Part shown: positions 7,777-63,571 of the stretch, in pieces
How the letters are laid out: each line of letters starts with the position of its first letter
Position numbering within the stretch: position 1 is the first letter of the stretch
Source: Paragordius varius
Lineage: Eukaryota > Animalia > Nematomorpha
NCBI GenBank assembly: GCA_964247055.1
Contig: OZ176056.1
Location: 1,426,001 to 1,490,000 of the forward strand
Direction of reading: 5' to 3'
Length of the DNA stretch: 64,000 nucleotides
Made by a program: the position numbers and the translations under genes
The notes under the pieces: model-generated
What the model was told of the DNA's origin: nothing
The model's input: only the letters and a program-made list of their open reading frames with translations
The model's database searches: none

Positions 7777-8323
7777 CAGTGTTCGCCCATTTTCATTGAG
7801 CATGTGGGGTCATTTGATAAGGTGGATATCTTATGAAAAAATCCTTGTTTTTATTTTTAATATTTTGAACATTTTCGGTAGTTTAAAATGATTATTTTAC
7901 ATTTTCACATTTTTAAAATGTGTATAATCAAACTTACAGTAATTTGAATTACACAGAAAATAAGTAAAAATTAAAAATAACCATATCTTTTTTTTGTTTT
8001 TTTTAATTTAACTCTTTGGGTTGTGAAATGGGGATTAGCGATGTAAATTGGTATTAACTAATTTTTATAATTATGGGAATTATAATTTATGAATAAGTAG
8101 TGTAGTCTTTTTAAAAAATATTTTTCAATTTTTCCATGTTGTGTTAGTAATATTAATATTTGTGAAATAGCTTTTTCTCGTTATTGTACAAAATGCTTAA
8201 AACATGAGCATATATAATTTAAGCAACAATCATTTTATTAAAGTTAATGTTTTTTAAATAATAACATATAAATAGAATTCATAAACCCTACAACTTTCTC
8301 TTGTTTTGAAAATCGGTGGGTTC

Positions 8324-11300: not shown

Positions 11301-12421
11301 AATACTTTAATCTATTTAATTCTTTACGGTAAACTCAAGTTAGCTAATTCTTACAATAAACTGTCCGGCGAAATCTGTTTTCAATAAATTCTCAACTCTT
11401 TAACAACTAAAACACAATCTATCTTGTTACTGAATTGGGGCTTCGGTGATAAGTGGATGCAAAAATAACTAATCTATTTAGTCCTTTACGGTAAACTCAA
11501 GTTAGCTAATTCTTACAATAAACTGTCCGGCGAAATCTGTTTTCAATCGATTCTCAACTCAACAACTAAAGCACCATCTATCTTGTTACTGAATTGGGGC
11601 TTCGAGTGGATGCAAAAATAACTAATCTATTTAGTCCTTTACAGTAAACTCAAGTTAGCCAAATCTTACAATAAACCGTCCGGCGAAATCTGTTTTCAAT
11701 CAATTCTCAACACGTTAACAACTAAAACACCATCTATCTTGTTACTGAATTGGGGGTTCGGTGATGAGTGGATGTGCACAATAATACTTTAATCTGTTTA
11801 ATTCTTTACGGTAAACTCAAGTTAGCTAATTCTTACAATAAACTGTCCGGCGAAATCTGTTTTCAATAAATTCTCAACTCTTTAACAACTAAAACACAAT
11901 CTATCTTGTTACTGAATTGGGGCTTCGTTGATGAGTGGATGCAAAAATAACTAATCTATTTAGTCCTTTACGGTAAACTCAAGTTAGCTAATTCTTACAA
12001 TAAACCGTCCGGCGAAATCTGTTTTCAATCAATTCTCGTTAACAACCAAAACACCATCTATCTTGTTACTAAATTGGGGCTTCGGTGATGAGTGGATGTA
12101 CAAATACGTTAATCTGTTTAGTCCTTTACAGTAAACTCAAGTTAGCCATACAATAAACCGTCCGGCAAAATCTGTTTTCAATCAATTCTCAACTCGTTAA
12201 CAACCAAAACTCCATCTATCTTGTTACTGAATGGCGGCTTCGGTGATGAGTGGATGTACACAATAATACTTTAATCTGTTAAGTCATTTACAGTAAACTC
12301 AAGTTAGCCAAGTCTTACAATAAACCGTCCGGCAAAATCTGTTTTCAATCAATGCTCAACTCGTTAACAACCAAAACACCATCTATCTTGTTACTGAATT
12401 GCGGGCTTAGGTGATGAGTGG
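8324..12421. repeat. Satellite/minisatellite array, 25 units of 156-168 bp (modal 167) plus a partial unit
   Basis: The anchor GGTGATGAGTGGATG, or a degenerate form of it, recurs at 8324, 8485, 8652, 8819, 8986, 9144, 9311, 9470, 9632, 9799, 9961, 10128, 10286, 10453, 10615, 10782, 10949, 11111, 11278, 11445, ~11604, 11760, 11927, 12084, 12242 and 12410. Confidence 0.97.
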
Positions 12422-16151: not shown

Positions 16152-19100
16152 TTAATTATAGACGGGTGTGGTAAAAGTTGTATTTAGTTTAAAGCTTTCA
16201 TTGAAATCAACAACAATAGAAGAAGGATTAAAATATTGTTCATATTCAAAATTATTTGTAACTTTTTCGTTTGACAATTCAAAAATTGGATTGATATTAT
16301 CTATTTTTTGACGCTTGCAATCAGGAAAATCTTGAGAATTTTCGGGTAAGCTGTTTTTGGGAACTTTAAGTTTATTTTGGGAACTATCAAATCGACGTTT
16401 CGTTTCCCATGTATTTGTGTAATTTTCGGTAAAATCCCCAACATTTTTAGAAGTTAAAAGTTGTAATAATTTGCTGTTGTTTTCATTCGTATTTTTATTG
16501 ATATTGGTATCTATTTTATTAATTAAGGATTGGTTTGAAATTGGTGGCGATATTTTCTTTTGATTTGCTACTTTAATGGGATTTGAATTATTCATTCTGT
16601 GGGTATATCCTTGATTTTTGCATTGAACTGAGGATTGAGAGATAGGCTCTTGTAAATCGCTAAAATATATATAAAATATATTTAATATGTTTAGTTTTAA
16701 ACGCTCATTTAATATAATTTATTAAACAATAATTAAGCAAGAACTTTAGATATTCAGCAACCATAATAATTAAAAGAATACATTTTTTGTAATTACAAGA
16801 GAATGATAGAATCACATGTAGATATTATAAAAATTGCATAATATAGCACAATTTTTGGCGTAAAAATTCCTAAAGGTGACATTTTAGATGTAGCTTCTTA
16901 TAAATTGGGCCAAACTTAATATGTACTAATAAAATTATATAAAATAAAATTACTTTAAGACATAGTTGACAGAAACGATACAATGAGGGCGGGAAGATCT
17001 ATTATTATGAACTAGAGTACAATGACTATACATCCACACCCATGGGCTCTTAGAAAACTGTTTAGTATCATTGTTGGAAGAAACATTATTGAAATTTAAG
17101 GCATTTTTCATATTATCCTGTTTAGTTTGAATATCTTTTGGGGAATTTTCTACGCCTTCAAATTTGTTCTTTATATCGGATTCAGAAGAATTTGGGCAAA
17201 ATAGAGATTTGGCCAAAAATCTGTAGTATGGTGTACGGGCTTGGCCTTTTTTCAACACTAAATTATTTAAAAAAATATTTATCAAAAAAAATTATTAATA
17301 TTAAAATATTTTCAATAAAATATAATGTCCGAAATCTGATATATGACTGTATTAATATTTTGTATAAAAATAAATTTATAATTGAATTGATTGTAAAGCG
17401 TGTAGGCAAACTAAATCAATTAAAAAAATTAGCCTAAAATAAACCCTAAACAAAAAATTAAAAATTATTTTTTTTTGTAAACTAAAATTTACATGATTGG
17501 TGAGTTTTCTGAAGGCCAGGCAGATCATGTGGATGAACGAAGGAATATAAACTTTTTTCTACCAAGTCTTGCGGTTCATACCCAATCAAATTAGTAACTC
17601 TAATTATATGAAATTTAGTAAAAACTATCGAAAAATCAATTTACTATATAGAACAGGGGTTTCCAACACACCGCCCGCGGAAAACTCAAAATCCATAGCA
17701 AAAATATGCTCACAAAATCCTATAAAATCCATATTTCTCAAACAATTTTTTAAATAAAAGTTTATGCTATTGTACAAAAACTAGAAAAGAATTTTATATG
17801 GTGTTTGCGTTTTATAGTTTCACGTAAAATTGGGTATGAATTAATTAATGCCCATATAAAATCCGAATGCGGCCCACGAAACCATTTGTTGGACCCGTGA
17901 AAGCTTTAAGATTTGCCTGACCAAAGCTGACAGTTTTGTTAAAGAATTACGCAGTTTAGGGTTTAGAACCCTAAATATTAATATATTTCTGTATGAACCA
18001 ACAAATTGTAAAAAAATTTATGCGATATTTGCCAAAATATATTAGATTTACTATTTACCGTTCACACAAATCAATAAATCACACCAAAATCATCTTAAAA
18101 GAAAATTTAATATATATCTGCGAAAACAACCAAACCACTATATACCTAGCTTCTAGAAATATGAGTTTAAGGTCTAAGCTCATTCGCCACATAAACATAT
18201 CGGTGTGTAATTTAATTTCAGTTACTGCACTAGCTGGAAAAGAGTAGGCTAAAGCCAATAGACCATCACATTTCAAACTTAAATTTTGCTCGGGGTTTCT
18301 TAAAGAATTATCAAAATTTTTATAAGATGATGAATTATTTTCGGATTCGTGGTTAAAATCGTGGTTTGGAGAATTGCTGCTTGAGTTTTCTGTAACTGTC
18401 AGCATTGTAGAAGGGCCCGTGGAATAGGGTAGAGCTTTTTTGGGGGGACGAACCAAAGACCATTTCATGTAACCGTTACAATGGATTGCCTAATTTTTAA
18501 AAAAGAATTTATAATATATATATATATATAGTAAAGTTTCTCCTTAAAGAGGCTTATTTTACCCTTTTACACCTCATATTCACCCTTAAATATTTCATAT
18601 TTATTACGCTAAAAATAAATTATGTGGTTTAGGCTTATATAAATTATTAATAACATTGTTTTTTCTTTGTATAATTTATTATCTATCCTGTATATTTTAT
18701 GTTAATTATAAACGAAGTTTCATCTTTTAAACATATCAAATAGGTAATTTTGTATATTCAAAAACACATAATTTATGTTAGTGGAATATGAAATGATAGA
18801 GGGTGAATTTGAAATGTTTTAGAGTATGGATATTTTAAGATTTTTAGGTATGTTCCCATTTGGAAAACTTCGTCCCACTTTTAAAATTTAGAGTTTGTTG
18901 AAATCTTTATTTAAATTTTTATTTAAAGTACAGGGAATTTCATTATGAAAAAATATAAAATTTCTGTAACCAGTTTAGTAAGTAACCTTAATATAAGTTC
19001 TTACTTTATAGCCATTAGAGGTCAGGCCTGCATTACGTTTGGCAAGAACACATTTAATCCTCACACAAAAACTGTATGGCACAGAAATTTCTAAAAAAAT

Positions 19101-22100
19101 TAAATATGTTATTATTATAAATAATTGGTATTTTAAAAAAATTCAAAAGATAAATTTAAAATTTGCGATGACATAAAAGACTTTTTTTACAAAAGACCTA
19201 ACCATACTTTTTTACACCTTGATATTTTTTACATAGACTATTCAGGGATGTCCAACATGCTTTTTTGGTAAACAAAAGTACTCTAAAAAAATATCACATC
19301 CAAAACTGGGCTTAAAATGATTAAAAAACCTAAAATTATCAAAGCAACCACAAAGGGATTTGTGTTGGACACCCCTGGGGACTACATAGACACAGATGTA
19401 AAATATAATTCTATTTATATATTAAGCAATTCAAAATAATAGGCTATAATGACAAAAAATAAGTTTAAAAAATTACAGCGGTCTTTTGCATAAAATATGT
19501 CTTTATAATTTGACGTTTTTAATAGTATACTTATAATTTTAACTCCATAATAAATAATTTATTATTATTAAAGCATAAAATTTATTTAAACTTCAATCTT
19601 AAATCAATTACTTACCCGATATTTTGCCTTGCAACAAATTCTTGTACTCTGTATGATTTTGTAAAACATAGGAAGGATTTAAAGCGTTCATGTTTAACAT
19701 TTCACTCAGTTCGTCTTGGTCATCGGGGTGAATGTATTCATAAATACTATTTCCAGTTAATTCCACCTATATAATTTTTAAGTAAAGTAAAAATTGAAAT
19801 TACACGACGGACAAAACGTAAAATGTTAATACATATGTTATTTCTTAAAAGACCCAAAATGGAAAATAAATGAATTTGTTATTGGGCAATCAATTATGCA
19901 AATTACTTTTTTTAGATAATTTATTAAAAATTAAAAAAAAGTATGGCTATTGTCTCTAAAAAAATATTTGTCTTTTTTTACGTTTTGTCCATATAGTTAT
20001 TTTAAATTCTACTGTATAATTATTTATTGTTTTGTTTTAGCGATTCCGCCGGACAAAAGTAATTAATTCCATAAAAAATGTGACAATGTAACCGATTGTC
20101 GGCATTATAAATTTTTTTCATTTTACTATGTAAAAAATCGAAAAAGACTGTTTTAAGAACAAATTTTTCTATAGAGCATAAAAACTTTCACAATGTGCGT
20201 ATTAAATCATTTAATTTTACAACATTGCGGATGTTTCATTGTGATACTATTTTTAAATTTAGTAAAATAAAACACTTATAAAAATTTATTTTTTTGGATC
20301 ATAGTTTAATAAAATGATTGCAACATTGAACTAAAATTTTATTTTTACAAAAAAAATTAACAGATGATTAACAAATACTTGAGATAAGCCTAAATGGACT
20401 GAGGCAGTTTCTGAAATGTAAACAATTTTTCCATCGGGCGAAAGAATGAATAGAAAACCTTCTAAAGTCTAATTATATAAAAAAATTACATAAAAATTGA
20501 TTATTTTTTCATCATGTATATTTATAAATTTTAAAATTTTTTGGGTTACCTGTAAAAGATGAGAGCCTATATCTTTAGCCAATAATTCTGCCGGAGTGTG
20601 CTTGATTAATGGCATACGACCCCAGTCATCTCCATTGACTAATTATTAAAATTAAAAAAATATTATTTTTAATTAAAATTTAAATGTTTACTTAAAATTA
20701 TTTATAATACAGATAAAAATTGAAAATTTACCTAAAAGACAAATATTATCTAAAACACCACCATACTTTTATAAACCTTGATTTTCCATATTTAAAAGTT
20801 ATTTACAATTATTAGGTTGATAATTTAAATCTCAATTATTTTTCCCAAGGGTTGTATTAAAAAAATCAGGGATTAAAGTTTACTATAATTTTTGTCTGCA
20901 TTTTTTATAAAAAATTTGGAATTTTATAATTTTTATAAAAATTTCACCAAAAGGTACCCTTGAATTATATATTTTATCTGCCTTTTTAATATAATATTTA
21001 TATTATTCTCCAAAATAAATATATAATTATATAAAGATAATTGGTATTGATTTTCAATTTATTTTTATTTAAGCAAGTAAGTAGCCTTTTAATATATATT
21101 AAATGATAATTTGTAAAGTAATAATTTTTTCTCATAATGATAAATAATTATATTAACTATTTTTATTATATATAAATATGTTCTCATCTACTAATAAAAA
21201 TATATATATAAGCAAGCCACAAAAATGTTTTTTGGCGTTGCTTGGGAATTTTTTGGTAACCAAAAATTCTAATTTGAATTAAAATATATTTATTGTTCGA
21301 AATTTTTGAAATACTAACTCTATTCCGATTTTAGGATTAAAAAATTTTTTCATGGCAAATTTTTAATTAAATTTTTTTTCAAAAAATTATTTATAAATTT
21401 TATAAACGTTTCATTTATTTTATTTAATTGTGTTGTTATTAATAAAATTAAACATCTAATATGTTATTATGTTTTGTAGCATCAAACATATTTCCCGATT
21501 TTAACTTAATAATGATTTGTTTTAAGCCAACAAATTATATTAAGAAGTCTACGCTGCTGTAAAATATAGCCTGGTCTGGTATACAATTTAAACGTTTTTT
21601 TATCAAAAATGTGTCCATAAACTAAATTTTGGATAAAATTATTTAAATATATAAATTTTAAAATAACGACAAACATTTTTCTAAAATACCGCTGTTTTCT
21701 TTTAAACAAGATTTTTTTGATTCCAACATTGTTTTAAATCGTTGCAAAGTATGAAATCGAGATGTAGTATATTCGCAATACTCTCAATTACATATTTTAC
21801 AATTGGAATTCAAGAATTTTTAATATAAATCAAAATATTAAGATTTAACAAAGTATGGGTTTTCTTTTACTATAAAATACTTAAAATTTTCACTTTTACC
21901 ATAAATACTATGAAATTTTGTACGTTTTAACGCAAAAAAACCCCCACATAATAATTGCATACTTTTAGGGACGATTTGACGGATCTTAAGGTAACTTGTC
22001 GTTAGTCGAATAACTGAAGCCTTATCTAATTGACTCGTTATAGCGGTTGGGATTGGTAAAAGTTTTGAAAGTTCTATAAATTCGGCATTTTCTTTCTCAC

Positions 22101-23978
22101 GGCGGGAACGGGCTGCAGTTTTAGATTTTTCTTTACCCAATACGCTTTCACAAATATTGCTATCTCCATCAGTTGAGTTTGCTGAGTTTTGTGGGAAAAC
22201 GTATTTTTTTGCCTCAATCGTCGTCGACGATGAATATAAATTATGACTTTGTGTTAAGTTAACTGGTGGCGTGGTGTCAATCATTATTTTGTTGTAATTC
22301 AAAAAATGTTTTTTTGGAATTTTTTCATTAAAATCGTTTTTATGGCTAGAATTATTGTAAGGATAATTAAAAGTAGTTTGATTGGAACCGTCATCAAATA
22401 TCATTTTTAAACAATCTTCTTTGCGATTTAGGGGTGACTTGGGTCGAGTGTAATTTTGATTTTGCCTATTTTACATATATTTATATAGATATATATAAAA
22501 TATGGAATTATTCAAAAAGACAAAACACCTATCTAAAATAATTGGTTCTACAATAACTATATATATTTCTTATTGAGGGATTTCTAGAAATTTATTAAGA
22601 TTTTCTATAATTTTTTTAACTTTCAAACTTTCTAACTTTGGCATTTAGCCAAAAAATGTAAAAGTTTTATAGAATGATAGTTTAAAGCAAGAGATCTATT
22701 TGTCATAAAACCACAAATTAATAAGAGAAAATAATGGTTATAGAAAAGTTTTACAATGTGGAAAAACGAAACGTTAAGTTAATTTAATTTAATTTGTCCA
22801 GAGTTTTTAATTTGGAGGCAAAAAAAAGTTTTTTTTGGTGATTTATGAGTATTTTATTTTATTAATGCTTTTATTACTATAAAATACTAATCTAAGGCTC
22901 ACTAACTATTGAAAAAATATTAAAATTTAATAAATATTAGAAGTTGGAAATTTTTTATAAAAAAATTAAATTTCAAGTGATTTTAATGGTTTTTTATGCT
23001 ATAATTATATCGTAAAGAGATCGGGAATTTTTTTGAAACTTTTAACTGTAAAAATAAAATATTTCATACCTAATCTTAGATTTATTGAAAAGGTCCCTCA
23101 TAATATATAAAACATCTTGAAAAAACTTGTAAAATATCTTTTAAATTTTTTATATAATTTTGCACAAATTTATAAATTAAATCAATTAAGATGGCTTACA
23201 AATTATTTTTGTCGATGGGATTCATCATTGGAGGTATTAATGTATCCGAATTAGGTATGAGAAAATTAAAATTATTATTTTGGCCCTTTAATATTTTTGT
23301 TGTAACACCGCCGTTTTGAATGATAATATTGTCGCAACAATTTGGTGACAAAGATGGTTTTAAATCATTAGAATCGCGACAAATTTTATAATTGTAGTTT
23401 TTATTTTTGGACAAAACATTATTGTATTTGGGGGTTGTTTTTTCAATTGGATCTAATTCTGATTGAATAGGAAACGAGGGATTGTTCAGTAAAAATTTAT
23501 CCATCAAATAAGTTTGAAAGAAAGAGGGCTGATTTTGCCCCAAAAATATATCATTATTAGAAGTTGCGGAATTTTTTATAGAGTCAAAATTGTCTTTATA
23601 TTCTGAATACGACAGGGTTTTACGTTTCAAACAATTTTCGCCTATTTGTTCCTTTGTCTTTAAATGAGTTTTACCGCTGTAATATATTGTAGGATTTATG
23701 TCTGATTTTATTAACGACGTTGTTGAGAATGAGTAACCATAGCAACTGTGGTTTTTTAAGTTATTAATATTGTTATTAATCACATAATCAAAAGCGTTTG
23801 AATGCGTATTATATAGATAAGGAATATTGTTTAAATTAAAATTGCAATTATAATTTTGATTTGGTGACATAACTTTTTTTGGCGAATTCAACATTTCTGG
23901 CTCATAAAAGGCATTATTATTATTGCTGTTGTATTGAAACGGTATATAATAATGATTATTTATATTGGTTTCCATCAT
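16152..23978 (-). CDS. sim: Single-minded-type bHLH-PAS transcription factor, 10 exons, about 986 aa
   Basis: Exons (minus): 23978-23200, 22465-21963, 20638-20550, 20468-20379, 19766-19616, 19090-19005, 18489-18146, 17599-17493, 17257-16954, 16659-16152. All introns are GT-AG, phases join, and the total is 2961 nt. Diagnostic motifs: [27 protein letters not shown]...[89 protein letters not shown]. Exon 1 assignment rests on phase match and is less certain. Confidence 0.93.
17654..17899. mobile_element. hAT-like MITE family B in a SIM intron
   Basis: Ends CAGGGGTTTCCAAC and GTTGGACCCGTG, with subterminal ATGCGGCCC. No clear 8-bp target-site duplication was seen. Confidence 0.6.
18560..18820. 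repeat. Palindromic element family C (GGGTGAATTTGAA subrepeats), degenerate copy in a SIM intron
   Basis: ATTCACCCTT on the left and GAGGGTGAATTTGAAAT on the right, the same motif as at 43130-43480 and 60685-60955. Confidence 0.4.
19243..19377. mobile_element. hAT-like MITE family B in a SIM intron
   Basis: Inverted ends CAGGGATGTCCAACA and TGTTGGACACCCCTG. Confidence 0.65.
19785..20014. mobile_element. MITE family A copy in a SIM intron
   Basis: AGTAAAAATTGAAATTACAC...GGACAAAACGTAAAA, with the inverse end TTTACGTTTTGTCC...ACTG|TA. Confidence 0.7.
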
Positions 23979-24303
23979 TTAAAACGCAAGGAATTTAAAA
24001 CGAAATTACAGTTGAAAGATAGATTAGGCGTTGATTATATGGTTGAATTTCAAATTTTGGATGTTTGATGTGTTGAATAATTTTAATATATGTAAAGATG
24101 ATTGGCACACAATACAATTTTGAAAATTATAAATTGATATATATAATTTAAAATTTTAGGAGAATGGATAACTATATTTAAGTTAATAAAATAATAAGCA
24201 TACTAGAAATGATATTTAAAATATTTTTACAAATTTTAGCAATATTGTTTTATTTTCGTTTTCATATTGTAAGAAAATACATATTTTTGTATATAAACTA
24301 AAA

Positions 24304-24319
24304 GGCGACTTAAGGTCTG
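24304..24319 (+). promoter_or_regulatory. Smad composite element GGCGAC-TTAAG-GTCTG (matches the Mad/Medea/Schnurri silencer consensus GRCGNC-N5-GTCTG)
   Basis: Perfect consensus match 326 nt upstream of the predicted SIM ATG, with a paralogous site at 32425. Confidence 0.65.
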
Positions 24320-24577
24320 ATAAGGCATATATATATTTATATATACCTTTTCTACCTGTAAATATACATATATAATTTGCTAAAATAAAATAAAGAAAAT
24401 ATAATATTTTATTTTGAAAATTTTTTAATTTATTTTCAAAAAAAAGCAAATTGACCCTAAGAATTGGTTTAAAATTATATTTTGTTGCTTTTTTTGCTTC
24501 CGTTAATATTTTATTTCTTATTTAAAATTATTTATTTTATTTTCTAAATAGAAATGTGTTGAAATCTTAAAAAATAG

Positions 24578-24593
24578 GGGAAGTTCCACTTAA
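24578..24593 (+). promoter_or_regulatory. Conserved island: kappaB-like GGGAAGTTCC overlapping NK2-like CACTTAA
   Basis: Matches GGGRNNYYCC. The paralogous island GGGAAATTCCACTTAT is at 32661-32676. Identity of the binding factor is inference. Confidence 0.4.
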
Positions 24594-25873
24594 CACTAAA
24601 ACAATAGAATATTTTTTCAAGTATTTTTTTCTTTTGATTTATTATTTTTATAAAAATTTTATTTAAGTCTTTATAATAAAATATTTATTCAAATAAAAAT
24701 CATTTTTTATGAAAATTAAAAAATATTTAAAAAATTTTAAAACGTCAATCATATTTTAGTGTTTTGGCAGTTACTCATATAATGATATATTTTTACCTGT
24801 GCTTTAACTATTTTTTTTTATAAAATTTCAAGGATTTTTCAAATATATATTATATATATATATATTATTAATTTTAAATAAAACCTAAAATTAAAACTAT
24901 TTTTTGATCAGATAAAAAAGATATATATATGTATGGTTTAAACAAATAAAGTATGTGAAGAATTTATTTTAATAAAATTATTATAAATTTTGATTACATA
25001 ATAATATTTATTACAATAGAAACTTTGAATAATAGAAATATTGGTGATGATCTATATTTTAAAAGATATACATCTTGAAATTTTAAAGCAAACAAAAAAA
25101 TTTTTTTTACCTGCAAAATTATTTTTAAATATTAAATATATTTTAGAAAAAAAATTAATTCTGCTTTTTAGAGGATTAGATATATATAAAAAAAATTTTC
25201 CCCATTTTAATTTAATATTGTTATTAATCCTAAATAATTTTGTGGGGTTTTTTTATAATAAATTTTATTTTAAATACACAATATCTTTAAACTAAAGTCA
25301 CGTATTTTGATTTATAATTAAAAAAAATTTAAACAAAAAAACTTAAAAAGACAAAACCGACGACAATGTAAAAATAAATATTTTAAGTCGAACAAAAATA
25401 TATAAATATATTAGGTGATAGGATTAATTACAAAATAAAAATCGAAAATATTTTAAAAAAAAGTTTAAAAAGTTTTAAAATAAAAAAAATAAAAATCTAG
25501 AAATAGTTCGTTAACACTTTACAATTTTTTCTGTCTTAGAATTTTTTACCATAAAATTATATTATAATATTAAATTATTATAATTACTGTATAATTTTGT
25601 TTTTTTTTCTTTAATTTTATAAAAAAATAAAAAAATTTTTTTCAGTTAAATATATATATATTAGTTAGCGCGTGAGATGGCATAAATTAAATCTGTGGTA
25701 TAATATAACTTGTTGTTTTACATTAAATAAAAATTTAATTTTTTAGCTTAATTTTTAGTTTTTAAAATATATTAATATTATTAAATATATATATAAATTA
25801 TTTATAAATTTTTATTTATCAAATAAAAGTTTTAATTTTAATTTTCGGGGAAAAAATCCAAAATGAAAATTTT

Positions 25874-25889
25874 GGCGACAAAAAGTCTG
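25874..25889 (+). promoter_or_regulatory. Smad composite element GGCGAC-AAAAA-GTCTG
   Basis: Perfect GRCGNC-N5-GTCTG match, with a paralogous site at 34399. Confidence 0.65.
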
Positions 25890-25985
25890 ACAATACATAT
25901 AAAATAAAATTTTTTTTTTCCATTCACATCAACAATGGTAAAAATATATGCCCTTAAAACAAAAATTTTAATATAAATTATTTAA

Positions 25986-25990
<5 letters not shown>

Positions 25991-26032
<42 letters not shown>
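25991..26032. repeat. (AT)n microsatellite
   Basis: About 21 uninterrupted AT units. Shorter (AT)n runs occur elsewhere, for example near 5390, 30480, 30660, 30910 and 35480. Confidence 0.9.
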
Positions 26033-26040
<8 letters not shown>

Positions 26041-26098
26041 TATTCGCAAGGCAGGGGGTATCTAATTATTATGCCCCCCAAAAAATTTTATGTATATT

Positions 26099-26113
26099 AG
26101 ACACTTAGGCGAC
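26099..26113 (+). promoter_or_regulatory. Variant Smad composite AGAC-ACTTA-GGCGAC
   Basis: An SBE (AGAC) and a GC element are separated by exactly 5 nt, with a paralogous site at 34590. Confidence 0.5.
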
Positions 26114-28197
26114 AAAAATGTATTAAAAAAAATGTAAATTATGGTATATATCAGGGAAATTGATAACATTTTAAGTTAATTATTATTTTAAATTTGTTAT
26201 AATTGAATTAATTTGTTTCTAATCTAAAAATTAAATTAAATAAAATTAAATATATATAATATATTTTACCGACAAAATAAGTCAGTGGATTACAAATTGC
26301 TTTTAACTTACTTTTAATAATTAATCTGTGTCGCATTAAAAAATCTTTTTTTAATATGTCTTATAATATTTCAATTATTTATAGGATAATAATAATATGT
26401 TGATTAAAATACAATTATAATTTTTTTAAAAATTTACCGCATACTTTGCGTTTTATAAAGGATTTTTTCGGTGTTTTTTTCCCCCAAACAGGAAACCTAG
26501 ATATATTTTTATTTATAAGAAATTAAAATTTTTTACTTTTTTGTTTTTTATAGCACACTGTAAATTTTACCAAAATTAAAAAATTAATTAAAAAACAATT
26601 AAAAAGTAGTGAAAATAAAATTACTAAGTTTGCATTTTAATGGTTACTTATTTCACACAATAGTAGGGGGCAATTTGCAACATAACAGTAGTGTATGGAA
26701 AAAAACAACAAAATGGTTGAATAAACAATTATTCCTTTCTTTTTTCCATACACTATGGTAAAAAACTCGTAAAATTTATATATTTTTTTGTTTTAAACCA
26801 AATTTGTAATATCAGAATATACATAATACAATGTTTCAAAGAACAAACAAATTGTATAAATCTTTCGTTTTACAGTCAAGTATACAATAATTGGCATCAA
26901 AGGAGGAAATCAGTGTACATCATCCGTTCGACAAAGGGAAAAATCATAAGGTGGTTTATAAACAGCGATGTGGTGCGTTTAAAGTTATACACGACCGTAC
27001 ATATTTTATAAAAAAAGCAAAAATTGCAAATTGCAAATTTAAAAAGTAAATATAAAGGTTTAAATTTTATTGCTTTTTTCTATTTATGTAATTAGAAAAC
27101 TCGTATCATCTAATCTAAACCATTCAAATCTCTTTTTTATAAATTGCACTTTAAAATTAGCAAAACAAAATTTTAAGCACAACATAGAATTAATTCTAAT
27201 GATACATTTCTAGTTGAAAAAAAAATAGTTTATTTCAGTAGTTTCAATAGTTATTGAGAAACCATGTGTGTCACACATTCAAATATTAATTTAGCTTAGC
27301 CTTAAAAGAATCACCCTAGTTTGTTAATAGAAAAAAAACAGGTAAAAAAAATTTTTTCATCATTATTTTATTGTACGTTTGAAACCTGTTGTTTCTTATT
27401 GGCTTTTAAGAAATATTCTATATATATAGATATATAATTATTGCATTTTACTTATGCATATTTTATAATATTTCCAATGATATTATATCTAAATCTGGCG
27501 ATGTTAAATTTTCTAAAAATAGTAAATAAATGTTATAATCATATTATTTATGTAAAACCCTAAAAAGGATGATTCAAATTATTTACCAGTTTTTAAATCA
27601 TCAAAAATTATTTTTGATACTTTTATTTATTCGATTTTTCGATGTTTCAATGTTTAAAAATAATTCATTATTATTTTTCTATATTTTTTGTAATTTCAAA
27701 ATTACAATATCAGTTTTTTTTAAAGAAGTAAATGTTCATGTGGAGAGATACATTTTAATTAGTGTCAAAAATAAAATAATTTTCGCTTTAAAGCGTTAAA
27801 AATTGTGTTGGTTAGTTTAAGTTATGTCCTTTTTACATCGTATTTAAAACACTCATCTATTTCCTATAATTTTATTTTTAAACGAAATTTCATTTTTTTT
27901 AAGAAAATATAAAAAAATATAGAGGTAATTTTTAATCTTAAAAAACACAAAACTCATTTTAGGGTTTGAAATGTAAATGGTAAAACTTTAAAATTTGAAA
28001 CGCTTTCTTTGATTTAAAACACTAACCAAATTTTATAGATGCCAAATACATTATATGGCTTTGTAAAATAATCCCAACTAGTGTTTACGACAATCTAAAA
28101 ATTGTTAAATGCCCCGACTAAAATAGAGATAGGAATAGGATTTATCATTCATATTGTATTTTCAAACGGATGATAGATATAACTCAAAGTGGTTTTA

Positions 28198-28442
28198 CAG
28201 TAAAAATTGAAATTATACGAAATCCTAAAAATAAAGACAAATTAATTTGTTCTATTTAAATAGTTTAAATACAATCGTATCATATATAAAATGCTTGTAT
28301 TATCAATTTACATCTTATATTATATTTTATAATTTATAACAATGAGTTATCCTCATAAAAATTAAGATTTAAATATGTCTTTTAGAAAATATATTTGCCT
28401 TTATATTTTTACGTTTTGTCCGTATAATTTCAATTTTTACTG
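28198..28442. mobile_element. MITE family A copy
   Basis: TA|CAGTAAAAATTGAAATTATACG on the left and CGTATAATTTCAATTTTTACTG|TA on the right. Confidence 0.8.
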
Positions 28443-29764
28443 TAAAATACGGATGACATCAACATAACTGTATATTAATATTAATGAAATGTTAAACAGT
28501 GGTGATATCCGATATTCGGCCCTCCAAATATTTTATGAGTCCGCTAAAGATTTGAATTACCAAATAAATACGAATACAAATGATTGATTTTGCTAAAATT
28601 AAATTGATAATATCAATCCGATTTGTGGGTTAAAATAAAAGTATTTTGTATTGTGTTGTTTGATAATTTTTTTACAGTTTTATTAGAGAACTAATAAAAA
28701 TATTTATACCTATATTTATATCTTTGAATAAATATTTTATAGAGATACTTGGAGGCCTCTTCGAAATTAACGGCCAATTAAATTAGATATACCTATAAAT
28801 TCCCTGAGCCAGAGTGCCACCTACTTTAAAAATAAGTACCTTTTTAAAAATTTCTTTGAAATACTTAAATATTTTAAAGAAAACGTGTGTAAATATTCAA
28901 TCAGGGCATTATAAACTGCTTTTTTGAATTCCTTAAGTATAAACTTCCTTACAAGTGTGCGGACCGGCTTAATGCGACCATGAATTCATGAAAGAGTATT
29001 AATAATTGAGAGCAATCAATAGTAAAATATAAAGGAATTAAAAATCTTGGGGGAGTGTTTAATTATTTTTAAATATTCAAATATATCAAAGAAAATATTT
29101 TTAAATGCCTAAATTTTGTTAGTATTTATATATCTTCCATTTACTATAATAGTTAAAAAGTGTAAAGTATTGTTAATTAATTAATAGGTCAATAATCTAA
29201 CCCTTTTTCAATTTTTTAAATTCAAATCAAAATTCCAACAATTTGTTTTAGAAACTTGAACATATAATCGAAATTTATTTTTTGGAAATTTTAATCCGCC
29301 ATTTGCGCCTCCATATCACACGATTTTTCCAAAATTTAATCAATTATCTTTATGCTATCGATATTCAAGTATTTTTAACTTTTCAAAATAAACATTATCA
29401 AAGATTAAAGATTTAACGGCGGTTAGGGTATATTTAAAAATAGAAAAAAGGCATAGTTTTAAACTATGGATTAAATATTATCATTTATAAGAAATTTTCT
29501 TTACGATATGTGCCCGGTGAAAAGATAAGAACAAACAAAAAAAAAGTTTTTCTTGGGGGGGGAGGGAACTTTACAATTTATATTTCAGCTGGTTTAAAAA
29601 AGTTTTATTAAAAAATGATAGAGGGAATATTCTAGAGCAACGGTTCTTATATTATGGTTTATTATATAGATATAGAGTGAGAATTTATTAGGCATGGTAT
29701 AAAAAAATGCAGATTGAACAATAATACATATTTTAATACTGTTGGTGTCACATATTTATATATA

Positions 29765-30052
29765 CGGTAAAAATTGAAAATTATATAAAGACAAAGCGTA
29801 ACATAAAAACAAAAAAGTTTCTCCCAAAGACAACCATACTTTTTTAACCTTAAATTTTTCTATATAAATTATTTAATTACAATGATAAATTAAATAACCA
29901 ATATACACCATCTCTATCTCATACTTTGCAAAATTCAAAACATTGAGTTTCAAAAAAAGTTAAAAAAAGTACAGCAGTCATTTGATAGCAAAAAGCATTT
30001 GTTTTTATGTTTTATAGCGTTCATTTTCCGTATATGATTTCAATTTTTACTG
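29765..30052. mobile_element. MITE family A copy
   Basis: TA|CGGTAAAAATTGAAAATTATA on the left and GATTTCAATTTTTACTG|TA on the right. Confidence 0.75.
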
Positions 30053-30652
30053 TAAAGTATTATTATGTGTGCATATTTGTTTGCCCCTATTTCAACTCCT
30101 GCAAAGTTTGTCTGGCTTATTCATTCCTGAATTCGTTGGTTTAGTTTTCATCCCTGTGAATGGACTTTAAATATTTCGTTTCGTTTTACTAAAACCGTAC
30201 TTTATAAAACTGTGATGGATTTGATTGATACGATCTTCGTTTCGGGTGTCAGCTAGAAATCGGATAGTGTTGAAATAATGATTTTTTAATGTATAATTAT
30301 CTTTCCATTTTTCGCATGGGTTTGATGTTTAAAAAACCATGAAATTCTTTCAAACACACTCTTGATTTGTTACAATGCCACCATCATTTTATTTGGGTTG
30401 GGGAGGTACAACCTATGAACAAAAACATTTTCTAGAAACTTCTGAGTAGAATATTACCGGTATTAACCATTCGTAATATATATATATATATATATATATC
30501 AACTCACCGGGTTTAAATGCAAAAAGTTATCATTTAGAATTTTTCCGTCAAAATTTGTCTGTCATTCATTTTTTTCTGAATATCAACGCTGTTTTGGGCT
30601 CCTTTGAGGTTTTAATCTTTGAAATATCCAACTTTTTTGCTAAATAAAAATT

Positions 30653-30691
<39 letters not shown>

Positions 30692-31329
30692 CAATTCAAA
30701 ACTATTGAATTCCAAGATTATTGAAATTTATATATAAATTGATCGTTTTAAGATACTCTATAATTTTAATTAAAAGATTTTAATGATTTGTGATTTATGA
30801 ATGTGATTTATATTTTCATATTTTCCAAATTATGGTACATAGTTATAAACATGGCTAAATCCAATATCTATGGAATAGTTATAAAACAAAAATGTTATAA
30901 AACCACAAATATATATATATATATATATATATATCTATATTATTATGACAAAGTTTTAATACTTTATAAAAGTTAGTTAATTTGGACTCGAGAAAAAAGT
31001 ATTGTTGGATGATTTATGCCTTTTTTTATTGTAAAATCCTTATTTTTTTCTATAGATAAAATCATTATGTAATTGTATAATTATTAAAAAACTATGAAAT
31101 GTGTAATTATTTACTAGGAAATTAATTATAAATAACGGTGAGATAATTTTAAAAAAATTATAGAAAAACCCAATTAGCTATTTTGGCGAATTTTTTTATT
31201 AAATATTCGTTAATAAATAGTAGAAAAATTTATTAATTTTGAAACTATACTTTCTCCGAAAAAACGATAATATTTTTTGTAAAAATATCATTTTAAAATA
31301 AATTTTATAAATAAGATATTTATATTTCA

Positions 31330-32144
31330 GATTAAAAATTGAAAAAAATTCCATTGGATATTTCATGTGAAAACTCAAAATAAAACTGAAACAAAAAATA
31401 ATTATCGATAAATAATCACAGGTGAATAATTTTTTTTGCCGCCCTTTGGCATGAGGTAAAAATTTTTTTAGTTTTTGTGATTGAATAATTTCAATATTAA
31501 AATTTTTATGGTTATTATTATTGCAAAGAATTATAATTTTACTCTCTGATTTTCAAATCAATTATTGTGTCTGATTGTTTTGAACTAAAAAAAATTATTG
31601 TTTTTTAATTTTTTTTGCTAAAGATTTGTTTAAATTTGCTGTATATTTTTATAATATGTTTTTTTAAAGGCAGGTTTTGTTGCTTTTAAAAAGGGTAACT
31701 GTATTAAACCTATTCGAATATATTTTTTATGTTAAAATTAGTTGTTTTTGATTCAGGAATAAACGAGTTAATATTTAATTTCGGGGATTGACAAAAATAA
31801 TTTTCAATCATATTTTCCCTATTTTTTATTGCTGCCTGTAGTAAAAGAATAATGAATTAGTTCCTAGAATTTTTTACTGTAACACATGGGGGGATAATCT
31901 GTATAGCTAATAGTGTGATGAACAAAAGAAAGAGCTGTTTTGGGGGTGAAATTCCAAGCGTTTTTAACGCAGTTATAACGGCTGAAAGAATCAATATTAA
32001 AATTGTTAAAATTTTTGTTTTTATTGTGCTTGATTGGTGATAAAAATGTTGGAAAAAACTAAAGATTTTTCTGGTTGCAAAAAAGCGTCAATGATTTGAG
32101 TGTATTGAATCGATTGTAATGATTTAAATTAATTTTTCCATCAT
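31330..32144 (-). pseudogene. Decayed duplicate of SIM exon 1
   Basis: It starts ATGATGGAA at 32144, 8166 nt from the real ATGATGGAA at 23978. Homologous peptide patches appear in shifting frames (IQYTQIIDAFLQPE vs [15 protein letters not shown]; LSP..NFNNFNI..YN..NAW vs MSP..NFNLNNI..YN..NAF; PKGG vs QNGG), with several frameshifts and stops. Confidence 0.7.
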
Positions 32145-32424
32145 TTATAATATGATCAATTTTTTTCAAAATAATATTAAAATTAATTTCTATATAAAAC
32201 CGACCATATTTAAATATTGAAATTTTCAATTTACTTAGTTGTAATTATAAGGTATATATATAATCATTGACATATTTCAATTTTAAAGATATGTATAAAA
32301 ATCAAAAAATATAAATATTAAGACATCAAATATTAGATACTTTGATTTTACAACTTTTTTTTAAATGTTTCTTCAAAAAAATGTTTTTTTTTATATTAAA
32401 AAATATTTTTTTGTCACACTAAAA

Positions 32425-32440
32425 CGCGACATAATGTCTG
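32425..32440 (+). promoter_or_regulatory. Smad composite element CGCGAC-ATAAT-GTCTG (one mismatch)
   Basis: Paralog of the 24304 site; spacer length is kept while spacer sequence differs. Confidence 0.5.
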
Positions 32441-33742
32441 AAATATACATCCTATTATGTATACCCGTAAAATATTTTATTTTATAATAAATAATTAGAA
32501 ATATTTTTTTGTTTTTTTACAATTAAAAGTCAATTTTCAGCATATTGACCTTAAAAATAATTTTGTAAGATGCAGATATTTTTAAATTAATTATTTTATA
32601 AAATATAGTTATAAATTATTTATGGAAAACAGGATGTCAGAAACTTAATAAAAAAAATAAGGGAAATTCCACTTATCATTTATATAAACAAAAGGATTTT
32701 TCAAGTATTTTGAAAATAGAGATCTTTAAAAAGTCTGTTTTTTTCAATACATTAGACATATTTAAAATCATAAAAAAGCATTTTTTTAATACGTTTAATT
32801 TTTTATAATAAAATTATGTCAATCATTTTGATTTATATTTAGGCGTGAAAATAAAATTTTATTTTTTTACCTGTGTAAATATACTTTATTTAACTTTAAA
32901 TTTCATAGTTTTTATAAGATATATATATATAAATATATATTATATTGCAAAAAAATTTTCTACTAGTAATTGAAATGATATATGGATTGTTAAAAACTCT
33001 TATTTTTACCTGTTTTAAAATAACATCATATCTTTTATTTAATTAAAAATTTAAGGTTTTTATTAAATTTATTTATATATCATGCAAAAAAATAAAAAAA
33101 TTTAAGATTATTTTTTTATTATAATTTATTTTTAAAATTACTGTTGTTGTTTAATCAGATAAAAAAGATGAAACCTATTATTTTTATCTGGTTTAAACAA
33201 ATAAAGTGTGTGAAGAATATAATTTTTTTATTTTATTAAATTTTTTATAAAAAATTTTTATAATTTTTTTATAAAATAATTTTTTTATTATATAATTTGC
33301 ATTGAAATTACACAAAAGAAAACATAATGATCTAAATTTTTATAAAAGATCTTATATCTTTCTAAACAAACAAACAAAAAAACAAAGTAACTTAAAAAAA
33401 ATTTTACCTGTAAAATTATAAATTTAGATAAAAAACTTTTTCATAAATATAAAAAAGTAAAAAGTTTTAAATTTTAGCTATTAGAAATATTCCGATTAAA
33501 ATAAATAATTTATTCAACAGGTTTAAAAATAATAAGACTTATATTTACAACTACATTCTACCTGCTTAAAAATAACGTGTAATATAATCTTAAAATTTTA
33601 TATTCTCATATTAAAATGGAAAATAAAAATTAAATTTACAAAGCCGAATTAAATGATTGAAAATAAAAAAAGCTGCCAATTAAATATTTTATAAATCTAA
33701 TTTTTTCCGAGGGCTAAAAACTAGAAAATTTCTTATATTATA

Positions 33743-33972
33743 CAATAAAAAATTGAAACATCAAAAAAAATGTAAAAATATTAAGACAAATTTTTTTTCA
33801 AAGGAAAAACCCTACTTTTTTAAATTTAATTTATCCCTAAAAAAATCATTTAATTACAAAATACATAATTAATTGTGCTACCAATTTACATTTCTATATA
33901 CTTTGTAGTTTAAAACAATGAGTTATATTTAAATACACCGAAAATTATGACCGTAAAATTCCAATTTTACTG
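33743..33972. mobile_element. MITE family A copy (degenerate)
   Basis: TA|CAATAAAAAATTGAAAC on the left and CCAATTTTACTG|TA on the right, with the internal family motif TAAGACAAA. Confidence 0.6.
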
Positions 33973-34398
33973 TAATTTTGCTTAAATTTAAATTGTTTAT
34001 AAAGTTTAAAAAAGTTTAAAAAGTTTATAAAAAAGTAATAAAAAATAAGTTCGTTAACACTTTACAATAATATATTTAAATGTCCTTAAAAATGCCCTAT
34101 TTGCTTAAAATTTATATTCATATATATTTTTTTATTATATATTAACATAATTACTGTATAATTTTATTTTACAATATATAAATTTTTTTATACGTGTGAA
34201 AGCATAAATTATATGTTTTGTGGTACCTTGTTTTTATATTTTTTTTAGTTTAGATATTTTAAAATTTTTATTTATATTTAATTTTTTAGACAAAATACCC
34301 AATTACAAAATATTTATTTTCATTTTTGTTAAAAAAAATCAGAGTATATATTTTTCAAATTAAAAAAATAGAAATTATTTTAAAACAACACTAGATAT

Positions 34399-34414
34399 GG
34401 CGACAATAAGTCTG
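34399..34414 (+). promoter_or_regulatory. Smad composite element GGCGAC-AATAA-GTCTG
   Basis: Perfect GRCGNC-N5-GTCTG match and paralog of the 25874 site. Confidence 0.65.
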
Positions 34415-34589
34415 ACAATATATATATTCATAAAAATATTTTTTTCACAAAAGAAAGTAAAAAAATGTATTTTGCCCTTAAAACAAAATATATATAGAAA
34501 AATATAATTTTTTTATACATTTCGCGTGGCAGGGGGTATATTTATTTAAGTCCAAAAAATATTTAATTTTTGCAGTTTTTTTATATATT

Positions 34590-34604
34590 AGACACTATGG
34601 CGAC
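34590..34604 (+). promoter_or_regulatory. Variant Smad composite AGAC-ACTAT-GGCGAC
   Basis: Paralog of the 26099 site with the 5-nt spacer retained. Confidence 0.5.
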
Positions 34605-35474
34605 TTAATACTGAGAAAATATTTTTTTATAAAAATACAGGTAAAATTAATATGTTAATCTTAATAACGTATTATAAAAATATTTCAAACGTATTTTGTA
34701 ATTTTCTTTCTTAATTAAATTAAAATGCATTTTGCCGACACGAAACAAAGAATGACAAATTGTTTAATATAAAACTTAGTTAATCTTTTTATTGTCGCAT
34801 TATTTTTAAATCAAAAATATTTTTGCCTTAGTAATTATTATATTTTAAATATGGTATATAATTAATTACTTTTAATACTAATTAATTTTTTATGGATTAA
34901 GATTATTACTATGTTAATTTTCGGCGGTTTATAAATTTTTTATAAACAGGATATCTGGATATATATAAATATAAATTTTATTATATTTTTATTAATATTA
35001 TTCTAGATTATTGTAAAATTCATAGGGATAAAAACAATTAAAATTTTTTTTATTAAATTATTAAAAAAACAAATTATTTTATAGATGTGTTGAAAACAAA
35101 AGTCATAAAATTTATATTATTTTATTTTTTTTATAAACAATGTTATAATAAACGCGAAAATATAACAAATTGTTCATATACTTTACAGTTTAGTATCCCT
35201 TATTTTGGCGTTCAGGCAGAAATAGAACCCATTCCGTTTAAAAATACGCAAAAAAGACGTTTATAAAACGCCTTGGCTTTCATTATTTTTATACGGTACA
35301 GTATTTTGAATATTTTAAGATTTTATTACTTTTTATTACTTTTTTTCACTTTATAGTATGTCTAAGGGAGGTATTTTAACTAGACCTACTGGATATATTT
35401 CTGTATAAAAAGTTCATATATTATAATAAAATCTTCCCAAAAAATTAAATACCAACCGAAAATACTGAATATAC

Positions 35475-35511
<37 letters not shown>

Positions 35512-35624
35512 TTCAATTGATTCTGGAAGAAATATTTTTAAAAAATTTGCGTTTCTAATAACCATGTGTATCACATATGAATCTTACAGGATAAAATAAA
35601 AATAAAAGTAAAAGAAATATTGTT

Positions 35625-35656
<32 letters not shown>

Positions 35657-38600
35657 TGACTTGAACGCCTCAAACCTGTCGTTTTTAAATCATCAACTAT
35701 TAAATAATTTTTATTGCATAATAGTGTGAAAAAATTTATATTTAAATATTTAGGTCCGCGGTTTATAACTAATTTTTTTTATTCAAATCAACATTTTTAT
35801 GTAGTGCTCTTTGAAAAAAGCAAACTAATCTGTAGCATATTATTTTGTCAGATTATAAATCGAACTAGCTAACCTACAATAAATTATCGTACTTATTATT
35901 AAATAAATATATATTTTCATATTTTCCTCAATAAAATTTTTAACTGAAAAAACTTTCAATATCTAAAAAAATAATCTACTTTCTGCATTATTAATAAGTA
36001 GTAATGATTCTTAGTATAGAAAGTTTTTGCCTTTGCTAATTTGTTTGAGGGCGTTTTTTGCGGGTTTTTTCAATTAAGCTTCAATATAATTTTCTCAAAC
36101 GATTTGATAATAAAATACCACCTAGATATTTTAAATTATTTTCAGTTTTTAAATCTATAAGTATAAATTGGGCTTGTAATGTTTAAAAAGAAGCCGAAAT
36201 ATGCAATAAAGCAATAAATATTACTTATTTACTACAGAATCCTAACCCCTAAAAATAAATTTATCAAAGCGCACAATCGAATTACAAATTAATTATGTTG
36301 AAATTAATGGTTTATATATGTATATCCTAAGATAGGTCATTTATAAGGTATAGAATTTTAATGTCTAAATTAAAATTTATAACTTATAACTGGGAGATAT
36401 TAAAAAAAATTAAGGAAAAATGCTGAAAAACCCAATATGTTAAAAAGATTCAATACAGTTCACATCAGTGAAATCCAATGATTTCGCCTTAGTTTTAAGA
36501 AGACTACCAAGCAAATATAATTTTTACATTGATATTAACGGATAGAAAAAAGTTATATTAGTAAACTACGATTGACATTTTTAAGGAATTAGCCCAATGA
36601 GAACAGACGTGCATTGTGACAGAAATTTAAATTAATTTTTCTATCAGGTGTATGATTTTATCATTTATATCTAAATTTCCGTATTTTAACTTAGAAAGAA
36701 AATATAATAAGTTATTATTAACTGTAATTAAAGCTTTTTTGCAATGAAAATTTAAAATTCGCCAAGACTAAAAATGAAAATGTAAGCTTTAGTATTAATA
36801 ATATGTAAAAAACCGCATAAATAACAAAATCAATCATTTAATTATTTATTACAACACTTTTTCTAATAAAATACAAGTTTCTGTCAGTTAAGGTTATATA
36901 TAGTTATTTTTTCTTAGTTAGTTCAGGACAGCGAATTTTTTTCAAAGACCCTAAGTTTCATTCTATGAAAACCCAAAATAGCGAGTTTAAAGCGATTTTC
37001 TCAAACGATATAGCCAATTTTTAGATCTCGAATTCAATTCATTAACATTAATATTGATGGCGACTTTTAAACAAAATTTTAGTAGAGAGCCTTATTTAAA
37101 TTAGTTGTTCTCAACTATTTCACCGTTAACTAATAGTAAATTATATCCAGTAAAATTTTTTATGATAAAAATTCATCTTGTAAAAATTTTAAAATTGTAT
37201 AGAATCAAAAACAAAAGACCATAACCGAAATATCTAGAGTCCCACATAAAATACGTATTTATATTTGGCTCAATTGCAACCGAAACAGCTAAATTTAAAA
37301 ATCACACCCGTAAATATTATCAATCAGTTTTAAAAAAACCGCGGTCTCTGGCATAAATCAAACAAAAATTCAAGCATCTTTCTGAACACAAATGGAAAAT
37401 TTTGCATATTTATAATATAGTAAACGACAATTATACTGAAAATTTCATGTGATAGAAATACAGTAAAAAATTAAAATTTTGCATTTATTTATCAATAAAT
37501 ATTCCATAATCACTCAATTTTTGTGAAGGCTTATTTTGCAGTAAGCACCCAGCGTCTTATTGAAAAGGTAAAGTAAAATAAACTGCTTTTATACGGGGGG
37601 AAAAACCTAAAATCTATAAAACCTATAAGAACGTTTCCGAAAATTGCTTCAAAGTTATTTCTGTCGTTTGAATTTATGCATGAGAAATGCTATACTCAGC
37701 GGTTAAGTATAAAAAACACTAGGCAAAGACATAGCTAAAGGGGCGTCGAATTTTTCTGTTTTTTTAAATTTTATTTCAAAAAATAGGTATTTAAAAGTCA
37801 TCTATTTAAATAATATAAAAAAAAACATCATTTATGAGTGGTCATGTCCACGGTTAGAATTCGATTATTTGTTAAAATCCATGAAGAAGGGGGGGGGGGG
37901 GCTTCAGAAAAACCAGCTATGCCACACTGGCATTAAGCCAAAAAAATTTGCTTTTACGGATAGATAAGCATTTTTGAGTTATCTATAGTTTTTTATGCAT
38001 TATTAAATTAAAATTATGTTGTTTTTATATGCTTTGAGGCATTTATAGAGGATGGACCCTTATGCAATGATATTTTAAAATATTTTAAAATATTTTAAAA
38101 TAGTTTTTTCCTGCAAGAAAAAACCACACCGAGTCAGTTTTATTCTTGTAGAATTAGCTTGAGATTTATAATATTTCATAGTGGCATATTATACATCGAA
38201 CGGACCTCTGCCCATACCATAGTTTATGTCAAATGAGCTTAAAACATCGGTGTGAAATTAGCTTCAAAGTCACCTTGTTTTCATATGAAGGTGCATTTTA
38301 CAAAGGGTCGATACCTACCCAGAAATAGCTAAATTAGAGGCCTTATAATTGAAGGAGATAAAACCATTATTGATTCTATACAAGTTTCATAGATTGGGCG
38401 AAATTTGGATTTTGACAAAAATGATTTTGTAGAGGGTTGAGATTTCAACTTCAAGAAGTAAGCCGCCTTCATCTGAAAAAATAAAAGCTATAAAATTTTA
38501 AAGGTTAAACACCTTTTCCACAAACCTGTCTCGAAGATTCAATTTTAGTAGGCTCGGTACTCAAATTGAGGAAAATGGCTAGACTTTAGACAGTGATTAA

Positions 38601-53134: not shown

Positions 53135-63571
<10,437 letters not shown>

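Follow-up and report, generated by a model that had tools for sequence, protein, structure and literature searches.

Candidate Smad composite sites in a duplicated upstream module of sim in the horsehair worm Paragordius varius

The sim locus of P. varius

We analyzed a 64,000-nucleotide stretch of the genome of the nematomorph Paragordius varius (assembly GCA_964247055.1, contig OZ176056.1, positions 1,426,001 to 1,490,000 of the forward strand), referred to here as the window, in whose own coordinates positions are given. It carries sim on the minus strand and, upstream of that gene, six short bipartite sites in which a GC-rich half-site and a GTCT half-site are held five nucleotides apart, the arrangement of composite elements that are bound by Smad proteins. 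These sites exist and are nonrandom in their occurrence, their half-sites are constrained, and they recur at sim in other species.

The gene downstream of the sites had been named as sim in an earlier sequence-based annotation (the original prediction), and Pfam matches together with comparison to the Sim protein of Gordionus confirmed it as a Sim ortholog. When Sim exons were searched singly, the bHLH exon (21964 to 22134, minus strand) matched Pfam bHLH_HIF1A (E 7e-17) and was 86% identical to Gordionus Sim; PAS exons with the Sim signature continue down to about 16956. A search among 1.8 billion representative proteins gave P0020 as the closest relative of the window Sim; NCBI lists it under Gordionus sp. 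m RMFG-2023 (assembly GCA_954871325), a nematomorph that has been described under the name G. montsenyensis and whose genomic G+C content is 26.9%. The two proteins have in common lineage-specific residues and an N-terminal exon rich in N. The protein collection searched held no second nematomorph Sim, and the first-ranked match in the representative set, P0001, proved to be an artifact, a duplicated Trachealess, with no bearing on this locus.

Just upstream of the bHLH exon, an N-rich open reading frame (ORF) of 260 amino acids (aa) at 23196 to 23978 (minus strand) probably holds the first coding exon of sim. The 179-aa N-terminal exon of Gordionus Sim resembles it weakly and collinearly, and a protein search with the ORF returned no matches. 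Between YYRF and WVW, the PAS-B exon (16956 to 17258, minus strand) carries about 52 inserted aa, rich in N, that are present neither in Gordionus Sim nor in other Sims.

A duplicated upstream module

The region upstream of sim contains two collinear sets of conserved islands. The gene-proximal copy A (22595 to 27610) comprises about 24 islands, the putative exon 1 and sites 1A to 3A, and the distal copy B (30748 to 35702) has the same islands in the same order. The islands are 10 to 37 nt long, lie at offsets of 8.07 to 8.57 kb, and are 90% identical between copies. They were found by information-weighted diagonal scoring, which replaced a plain blastn comparison of A and B that had been swamped by AT-rich noise. 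Strong nonrepetitive diagonal matches numbered 12 at offsets of 8000 to 8999, versus 0 to 4 in each of 33 other bands. Alignment of the DNA between the islands was no better than that of shuffled DNA (2664 versus 2634 matches); this sequence is randomized to saturation, and the islands are preserved. Judged from the sequence, the arrangement is an old tandem duplication of about 5 kb upstream of minus-strand sim.

In copy B, the counterpart of the exon-1 start reads MMEKLI and then a stop, and the coding exon is dead; no exon remnant, including one of the bHLH exon, was detectable in that copy. Rfam and tRNA scans of 24745 to 37000 were empty. The duplication seemed at first to continue to 19.8-20.1 kb and 28.2-28.5 kb, but the match there belongs to a dispersed repeat, of which a third copy stands at 45763. 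This small repeat, TTTTTACGTTTTGTCC.TAT.ATTTCAATT, occurs at 19975 to 19995, 28401 to 28435 and 45763 to 45797; one copy lies in a sim intron and one between the duplication copies, and the repeat thus mimics a longer duplication.

Two islands of the module contain other recognizable motifs. A kappaB-like decamer, GGGAAGTTCC (24578 to 24587, plus strand), and its paralog GGGAAATTCC (32661 to 32670) lie in a 27-nt island kept in both copies, about 260 nt from site 1. A second island has an RCGTG core, as GCGTG at 25670 to 25674 in copy A and ACGTG at 34192 to 34196 in copy B. RCGTG is the core of the central nervous system (CNS) midline element bound by Sim:Arnt in flies, and sim may therefore regulate itself.

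Composite sites in the window

All six sites lie where the original prediction had placed them. Site 1A (24304 to 24319, plus strand; GGCGAC-TTAAG-GTCTG) is a strict match to the Smad composite of the silencer element (SE) or ID type; it is oriented antisense to sim and precedes the ATG of the putative first coding exon by 326 nt. Its paralog, site 1B (32425 to 32440, plus strand; CGCGAC-ATAAT-GTCTG), has a relaxed GC half-site. Site 2A (25874 to 25889, plus strand; GGCGAC-AAAAA-GTCTG), within a 29-nt conserved island, and its paralog 2B (34399 to 34414, plus strand; GGCGAC-AATAA-GTCTG) are both strict matches. Site 3A (26099 to 26113, minus strand) reads AGAC-ACTTA-GGCGAC on the plus strand and GTCGCC-N5-GTCTA on the minus strand, sense to sim, and its paralog 3B (34590 to 34604, minus strand) reads AGAC-ACTAT-GGCGAC on the plus strand.

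The three pairs that had been proposed are real, each being an island of the diverged tandem duplication at offsets of 8.07 to 8.57 kb. Because the pairs come from that duplication, the sites count statistically as three independent sites, each copied, and not as six.

The window has a G+C content of 24.7%. The strict consensus GRCGNC-N5-GTCTG matched three times in its 64 kb, versus 0.00 expected from 100 shuffles and 0.003 from 300 dinucleotide shuffles of the window; the earlier chance estimate of roughly 0.001 was of the right order of magnitude. AGAC-N5-GGCGAC, present at 26099 and 34590, had an expectation of 0.007 in dinucleotide shuffles. As for the spacing, GTCT follows at exactly N5 after 5 of the 24 GCGAC pentamers in the window, and it follows none of them at any other spacing from 0 to 15 across the whole window. 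The inverted arrangement GGCGAC-N5-AGAC is absent from the window. A seventh site, which the original prediction had missed, lies at 61299 to 61314 (plus strand; CGCGAC-ATCTG-GTCTA), in an intron-like stretch, flanked by exons, of an eIF2-alpha-kinase-like gene on the minus strand; no other such site lies in the window outside the sim upstream region.

Selection on the half-sites and the spacer

Across the three A/B pairs, 1 of 32 half-site positions and 5 of 15 spacer positions differ (Fisher p=0.009), as do 60 of 120 positions in the 20-nt flanks. Spacer length is 5 nt in all pairs and was never altered. The single core change, from G to C, falls at position 1 of site 1B; this position is the most tolerant one, as fly NRCGNC still forms the complex (PMC3738585) and human reporters agree (PMC11907993). 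Position 6 is C at every site; the human assay found this C to be essential (PMC11907993). The sites are under purifying selection in both copies, with the spacer free in sequence and fixed in length, and the pattern is that expected of a protein complex that would read two half-sites at a fixed distance.

These data bear on the possibility that the islands have no function and are duplication leftovers, gene-conversion patches or fragments of a dispersed repeat. The window does contain a small dispersed repeat (19975, 28401 and 45763), and its many AT microsatellites give spurious similarity. We consider this explanation highly improbable: the inter-island DNA is saturated, so that more than 20 short collinear blocks could not credibly have persisted under neutrality; the substitutions follow the structure of half-sites and spacer; and the motif, which is not embedded in a longer repeated sequence in either nematomorph genus, recurs at sim in other phyla.

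sim loci of other animals

In the Gordionus sim locus (L002, with the exon-1 ATG at 10001 and the bHLH exon at 21423), GGCGAC-N5-GTCT occurs twice versus 0.03 expected. The upstream site (L002 9399 to 9413, minus strand) lies about 590 nt upstream of the ATG and is antisense to the gene, like site 1A; the other (L002 17559 to 17573) falls within intron 1 and precedes the bHLH exon by 3.85 kb. The sequence TGGCGACAAT is common to site 2B and the Gordionus upstream site. A 10-mer comparison of the window with Gordionus yielded only noise except for ATTGTCGCCA at site 2B (cross-locus comparisons left out window positions 24705 to 24744). The two Gordionus sites have only about 22 nt in common and unrelated flanks, which rules out transposon ends as their source. 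Apart from the sim 5' regions, one such site occurs in the approximately 97 kb of window and L002 combined, a count from a small sample that argues against an evenly abundant motif.

Strict sites are also present at arthropod sim loci. Those of Daphnia pulex (GGCGCCAAGCAGTCTG) and D. magna (GGCGCCACGCAGTCTG) differ by one spacer substitution; each is oriented antisense to sim, about 4.0 kb before the bHLH exon, and belongs to an orthologous block of some 40 nt, one of only five conserved blocks in 2.2 kb. In the medfly, Ceratitis capitata, GGCGTCTTGTTGTCTG is found 2.0 kb upstream of the bHLH exon, again antisense to sim. The Daphnia and medfly sites use the canonical half-sites GGCGCC or GGCGTC. 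Finding at least two lineages with a site out of six has a probability of about 0.01, given shuffle expectations of 0.005 to 0.145 per locus. The recurrence of sites at sim across phyla is suggestive, not decisive.

In both Daphnia loci (L004, 2633 to 3257; L006, 4194 to 5019) and in a mayfly (L008, 2982 to 3614), a small Fer2 (ferredoxin-like) gene is found upstream of sim in divergent orientation. Fer2 and sim form a conserved microsynteny, and the Daphnia Smad-type site lies inside the shared intergenic region.

The positions of the sites could also be read in another way, with the islands as alternative promoters or short 5' noncoding exons of sim and the motif acting near the promoter or at the transcript level without responding to a signal. 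TTACCTG, which is CAGGTAA in gene sense, occurs seven times on the plus strand, five of them in A/B islands and all of these in gene sense; the sim exon at 20546 has this very heptamer, CAGGTAA, as its genuine splice donor. At 34 nt from site 1A there is an ACAGGTA, and at 29 to 38 nt from the Daphnia site (L004 and L006) a CACAGGTAA, in the same order; site 1A itself is only 326 nt from the ATG. There is no donor-like sequence near sites 2 and 3, however, and CAGGTA is also a Snail/ZEB-type box. This explanation would moreover be compatible with Smad binding, given that a promoter-proximal position strengthens the responses of Smad composites (PMC11907993). We regard it as improbable that promoter or exon function accounts for the motif. 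The TTACCTG copies in conserved islands stand at 24793, 25107, 32867, 33006 and 33404, with a further copy at 24353; the CAGGTAA of these islands might serve as a splice donor for alternative first exons or as a Snail/ZEB-type box.

Fit to the Smad composite grammar

The Drosophila silencer element GRCGNC-N5-GTCTG is bound by Mad on its GC part and by Medea on GTCT (PMC3738585, PMC9508838), and its 5-nt spacer and T15 permit the docking of Schnurri (PMC9508838, PMC3738585). The relaxed fly forms NRCGNC and GNCGNC-N5-GNCTN keep weak complex formation (PMC3738585). The vertebrate ID-type element, GGCGCC-N5-GTCTG, requires a strict 5-bp spacing and binds SMAD1/5 and SMAD4 back-to-back; inverting the GTCT half-site inactivates it, and the form CAGAC-N5-GGCGCC is active (PMC11907993).

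In P. varius, the GC-rich half-site expected for a receptor-Smad is GGCGAC at sites 1A, 2A and 2B and takes the relaxed forms CGCGAC at 1B and GTCGCC at 3A and 3B (minus strand). The half-site expected for a co-Smad stands back-to-back with it, as GTCTG in four sites and as GTCTA in pair 3, across a 5-nt spacer of free sequence. G12, C14 and T15, the Schnurri-docking positions, are kept in all six sites and in both Gordionus sites.

Pair 3 had been listed with the other composite sites; it agrees with the relaxed consensus and not with the strict one. It is not the reverse complement of the strict element; its minus strand, GTCGCC-N5-GTCTA, fits only the relaxed GNCGNC-N5-GNCTN (PMC3738585). 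It does obey the rule for back-to-back binding, in which each side of the spacer has G at +1 and C at +3 (PMC11907993).

A different dimeric or bipartite factor of this lineage, with a preference for GCGAC-N5-GTCT that coincides with the Smad grammar, could have left the same traces, and BMP (bone morphogenetic protein) would then have no part in them. What the sequence records is constraint and spacing, not the identity of a protein. A further conserved island (TGTCGCATTA at 26329 and 34793) has GCGAC unaccompanied by GTCT, and none of the GC half-sites in the nematomorph loci is the canonical GGCGCC. Two independent islands nevertheless match a predefined 16-nt consensus and a third matches its relaxed form, a coincidence with a chance of about 10^-3 for the approximately 520 nt of conserved sequence, and the sim loci of Daphnia and medfly have the canonical GGCGCC or GGCGTC forms. 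We know of no other animal factor with GCGAC-N5-GTCT bipartite specificity. NFI, RFX, YY1/Pho and nuclear-receptor half-sites were rejected, as the extra bases they need are not conserved between the paralogs (compared by eye). All told, we think it rather unlikely that such a factor, and not a Smad complex, is responsible.

Other features of the window

The eIF2-alpha-kinase-like gene occupies 54530 to 62750 on the minus strand; it encodes an HRDLK motif and has long N/S-rich ORFs (296 and 322 aa) between its kinase exons. About 4 kb past the last recognized sim exon, a 167-bp satellite of about 24 copies that are 89% identical extends from 8321 to 12423 and yields a ladder of ORFs of about 63 aa.

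Discussion

In most bilaterians, dorsoventral patterning depends on BMP gradients, and the ventral midline of the CNS is marked by sim. With somewhat more confidence than doubt, we favor the interpretation that the six sites represent three Smad composite BMP-response elements in a duplicated regulatory module of sim, each present twice because the old tandem duplication copied the 5' regulatory module of about 5 kb. That Smads are the binding proteins and that sim responds to BMP is what we infer from the features described above. We postulate that a BMP-activated trimer would bind back-to-back across the fixed 5-bp spacer, with the receptor-Smad (Mad/Smad1/5) on GGCGAC and the co-Smad (Medea/Smad4) on GTCT. 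The transcription of sim would thereby be tied directly to the level of BMP. A Schnurri-type corepressor might then be recruited, and sim would be shut off where BMP is high.

If the elements are Smad sites, we lean slightly toward repression over activation. Recruitment of a Schnurri-type protein is suggested by the ecdysozoan host, by the thymine of GTCT that is always kept, and by the repression of the fly neuroectoderm genes ind, vnd and brk by Dpp through such sites (for ind, see PMC3245246). The identical grammar is, however, a BMP-activating element in vertebrate ID genes (PMC11907993), and it can activate in Drosophila neurons (PMC9508838). Docking on the fly element is the work of zinc fingers 6 to 8 of Schnurri, and the vertebrate protein lacks them (PMC10853822). 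These points tell against a firm assignment of the sign of regulation or of a role to Schnurri.

The original prediction had proposed that sim is directly controlled, and probably repressed, by BMP through clustered Schnurri silencers. The Smad part of this proposal is supported: the sites fit the composite grammar, they have evolved as a spaced bipartite protein-binding site would, and they recur at sim in Gordionus, Daphnia and Ceratitis. The silencer label and the repressive sign, by contrast, are not supported, given activation by the same grammar in vertebrates and, in some cases, in fly neurons, and a vertebrate Schnurri without docking fingers. The literature searched contained no mention of schnurri for Nematomorpha. 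In line with the prediction, we found no paper joining sim to a Smad silencer or response element in a literature search that was incomplete. The kind of element, a 5-bp-spaced Smad composite, is already known; its instance at sim is new.

Several observations weigh against control by BMP and Smads. The palindromic GGCGCC performed best in human reporters, in which most substitutions in the GC half-site weakened or abolished the response (PMC11907993), and the GC half-site here is GGCGAC. The other islands of the window are not recognizable in Gordionus, so that individual sites are at most putative orthologs across genera. Four of the six other lineages (the compact genome of L003, thrips, mayfly and Saccoglossus) have no strict site in the gene or in the 10 kb flanking it at either end. 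Enrichment across phyla is modest, and it would be weaker still if real genomes carry sites at about twice the shuffled rate. Such a rate is suggested by D. melanogaster, in which 385 sites were counted (PMC9508838), versus about 217 in our mononucleotide estimate. Finally, BMP function in Nematomorpha is unstudied (PMC11226491).

A broader hypothesis is that a Smad composite element beside sim is an ancestral ecdysozoan feature, possibly an older one, that has been overlooked even in Drosophila. We offer it as a speculation that is more probably wrong than right, and by a good way. If it were true, a 16-nt site would link BMP directly to the master gene of the CNS midline, and this site would have survived in horsehair worms, water fleas and flies, having been triplicated and then duplicated in horsehair worms. 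The dorsoventral BMP gradient and the specification of the midline would then be joined by a direct molecular link. The constrained half-sites and the recurrence make direct BMP input to sim a hypothesis testable in Drosophila, medfly or Daphnia by way of one 16-nt site. Should the BMP hypothesis fail, the locus would still be a clean natural case of the retention of conserved elements after duplication of a regulatory module.

Comparison with known systems

As a whole, the locus resembles shadow or duplicated cis-regulatory modules, with two collinear copies and about 24 short conserved blocks amid randomized DNA. The distal copy here has lost its coding exon yet retained the blocks. In contrast to those systems, the redundant or additive activity of the two modules is presumed here from their structure.

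The individual sites have the same half-sites, strict 5-bp spacing and back-to-back orientation as the vertebrate ID-type elements of ID1/2/3 and MSX2, and they share with them a tolerant position 1, an invariant C6, a free spacer sequence and rarity in the genome. The vertebrate element differs in that it activates and in that its best GC half-site is the palindrome GGCGCC; the nematomorph sites have GGCGAC, and the Daphnia sim site has GGCGCC.

The silencer element of Drosophila (brk, bam and gsb, and the ind and vnd enhancers) differs in its gene and phylum, the target here being sim, and in being bound by pMad, Medea and Schnurri, where such binding, like repression, is a prediction for the nematomorph elements; the Gordionus sites and the site at 61299 also end in GTCTA and not GTCTG. 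Its strict consensus is nonetheless matched exactly at sites 1A, 2A and 2B, and its relaxed forms are matched at site 1B and pair 3, with the 5-nt spacer invariant and T15 retained. As at brk, several sites are clustered at one locus, and the host, like the fly, is an ecdysozoan.

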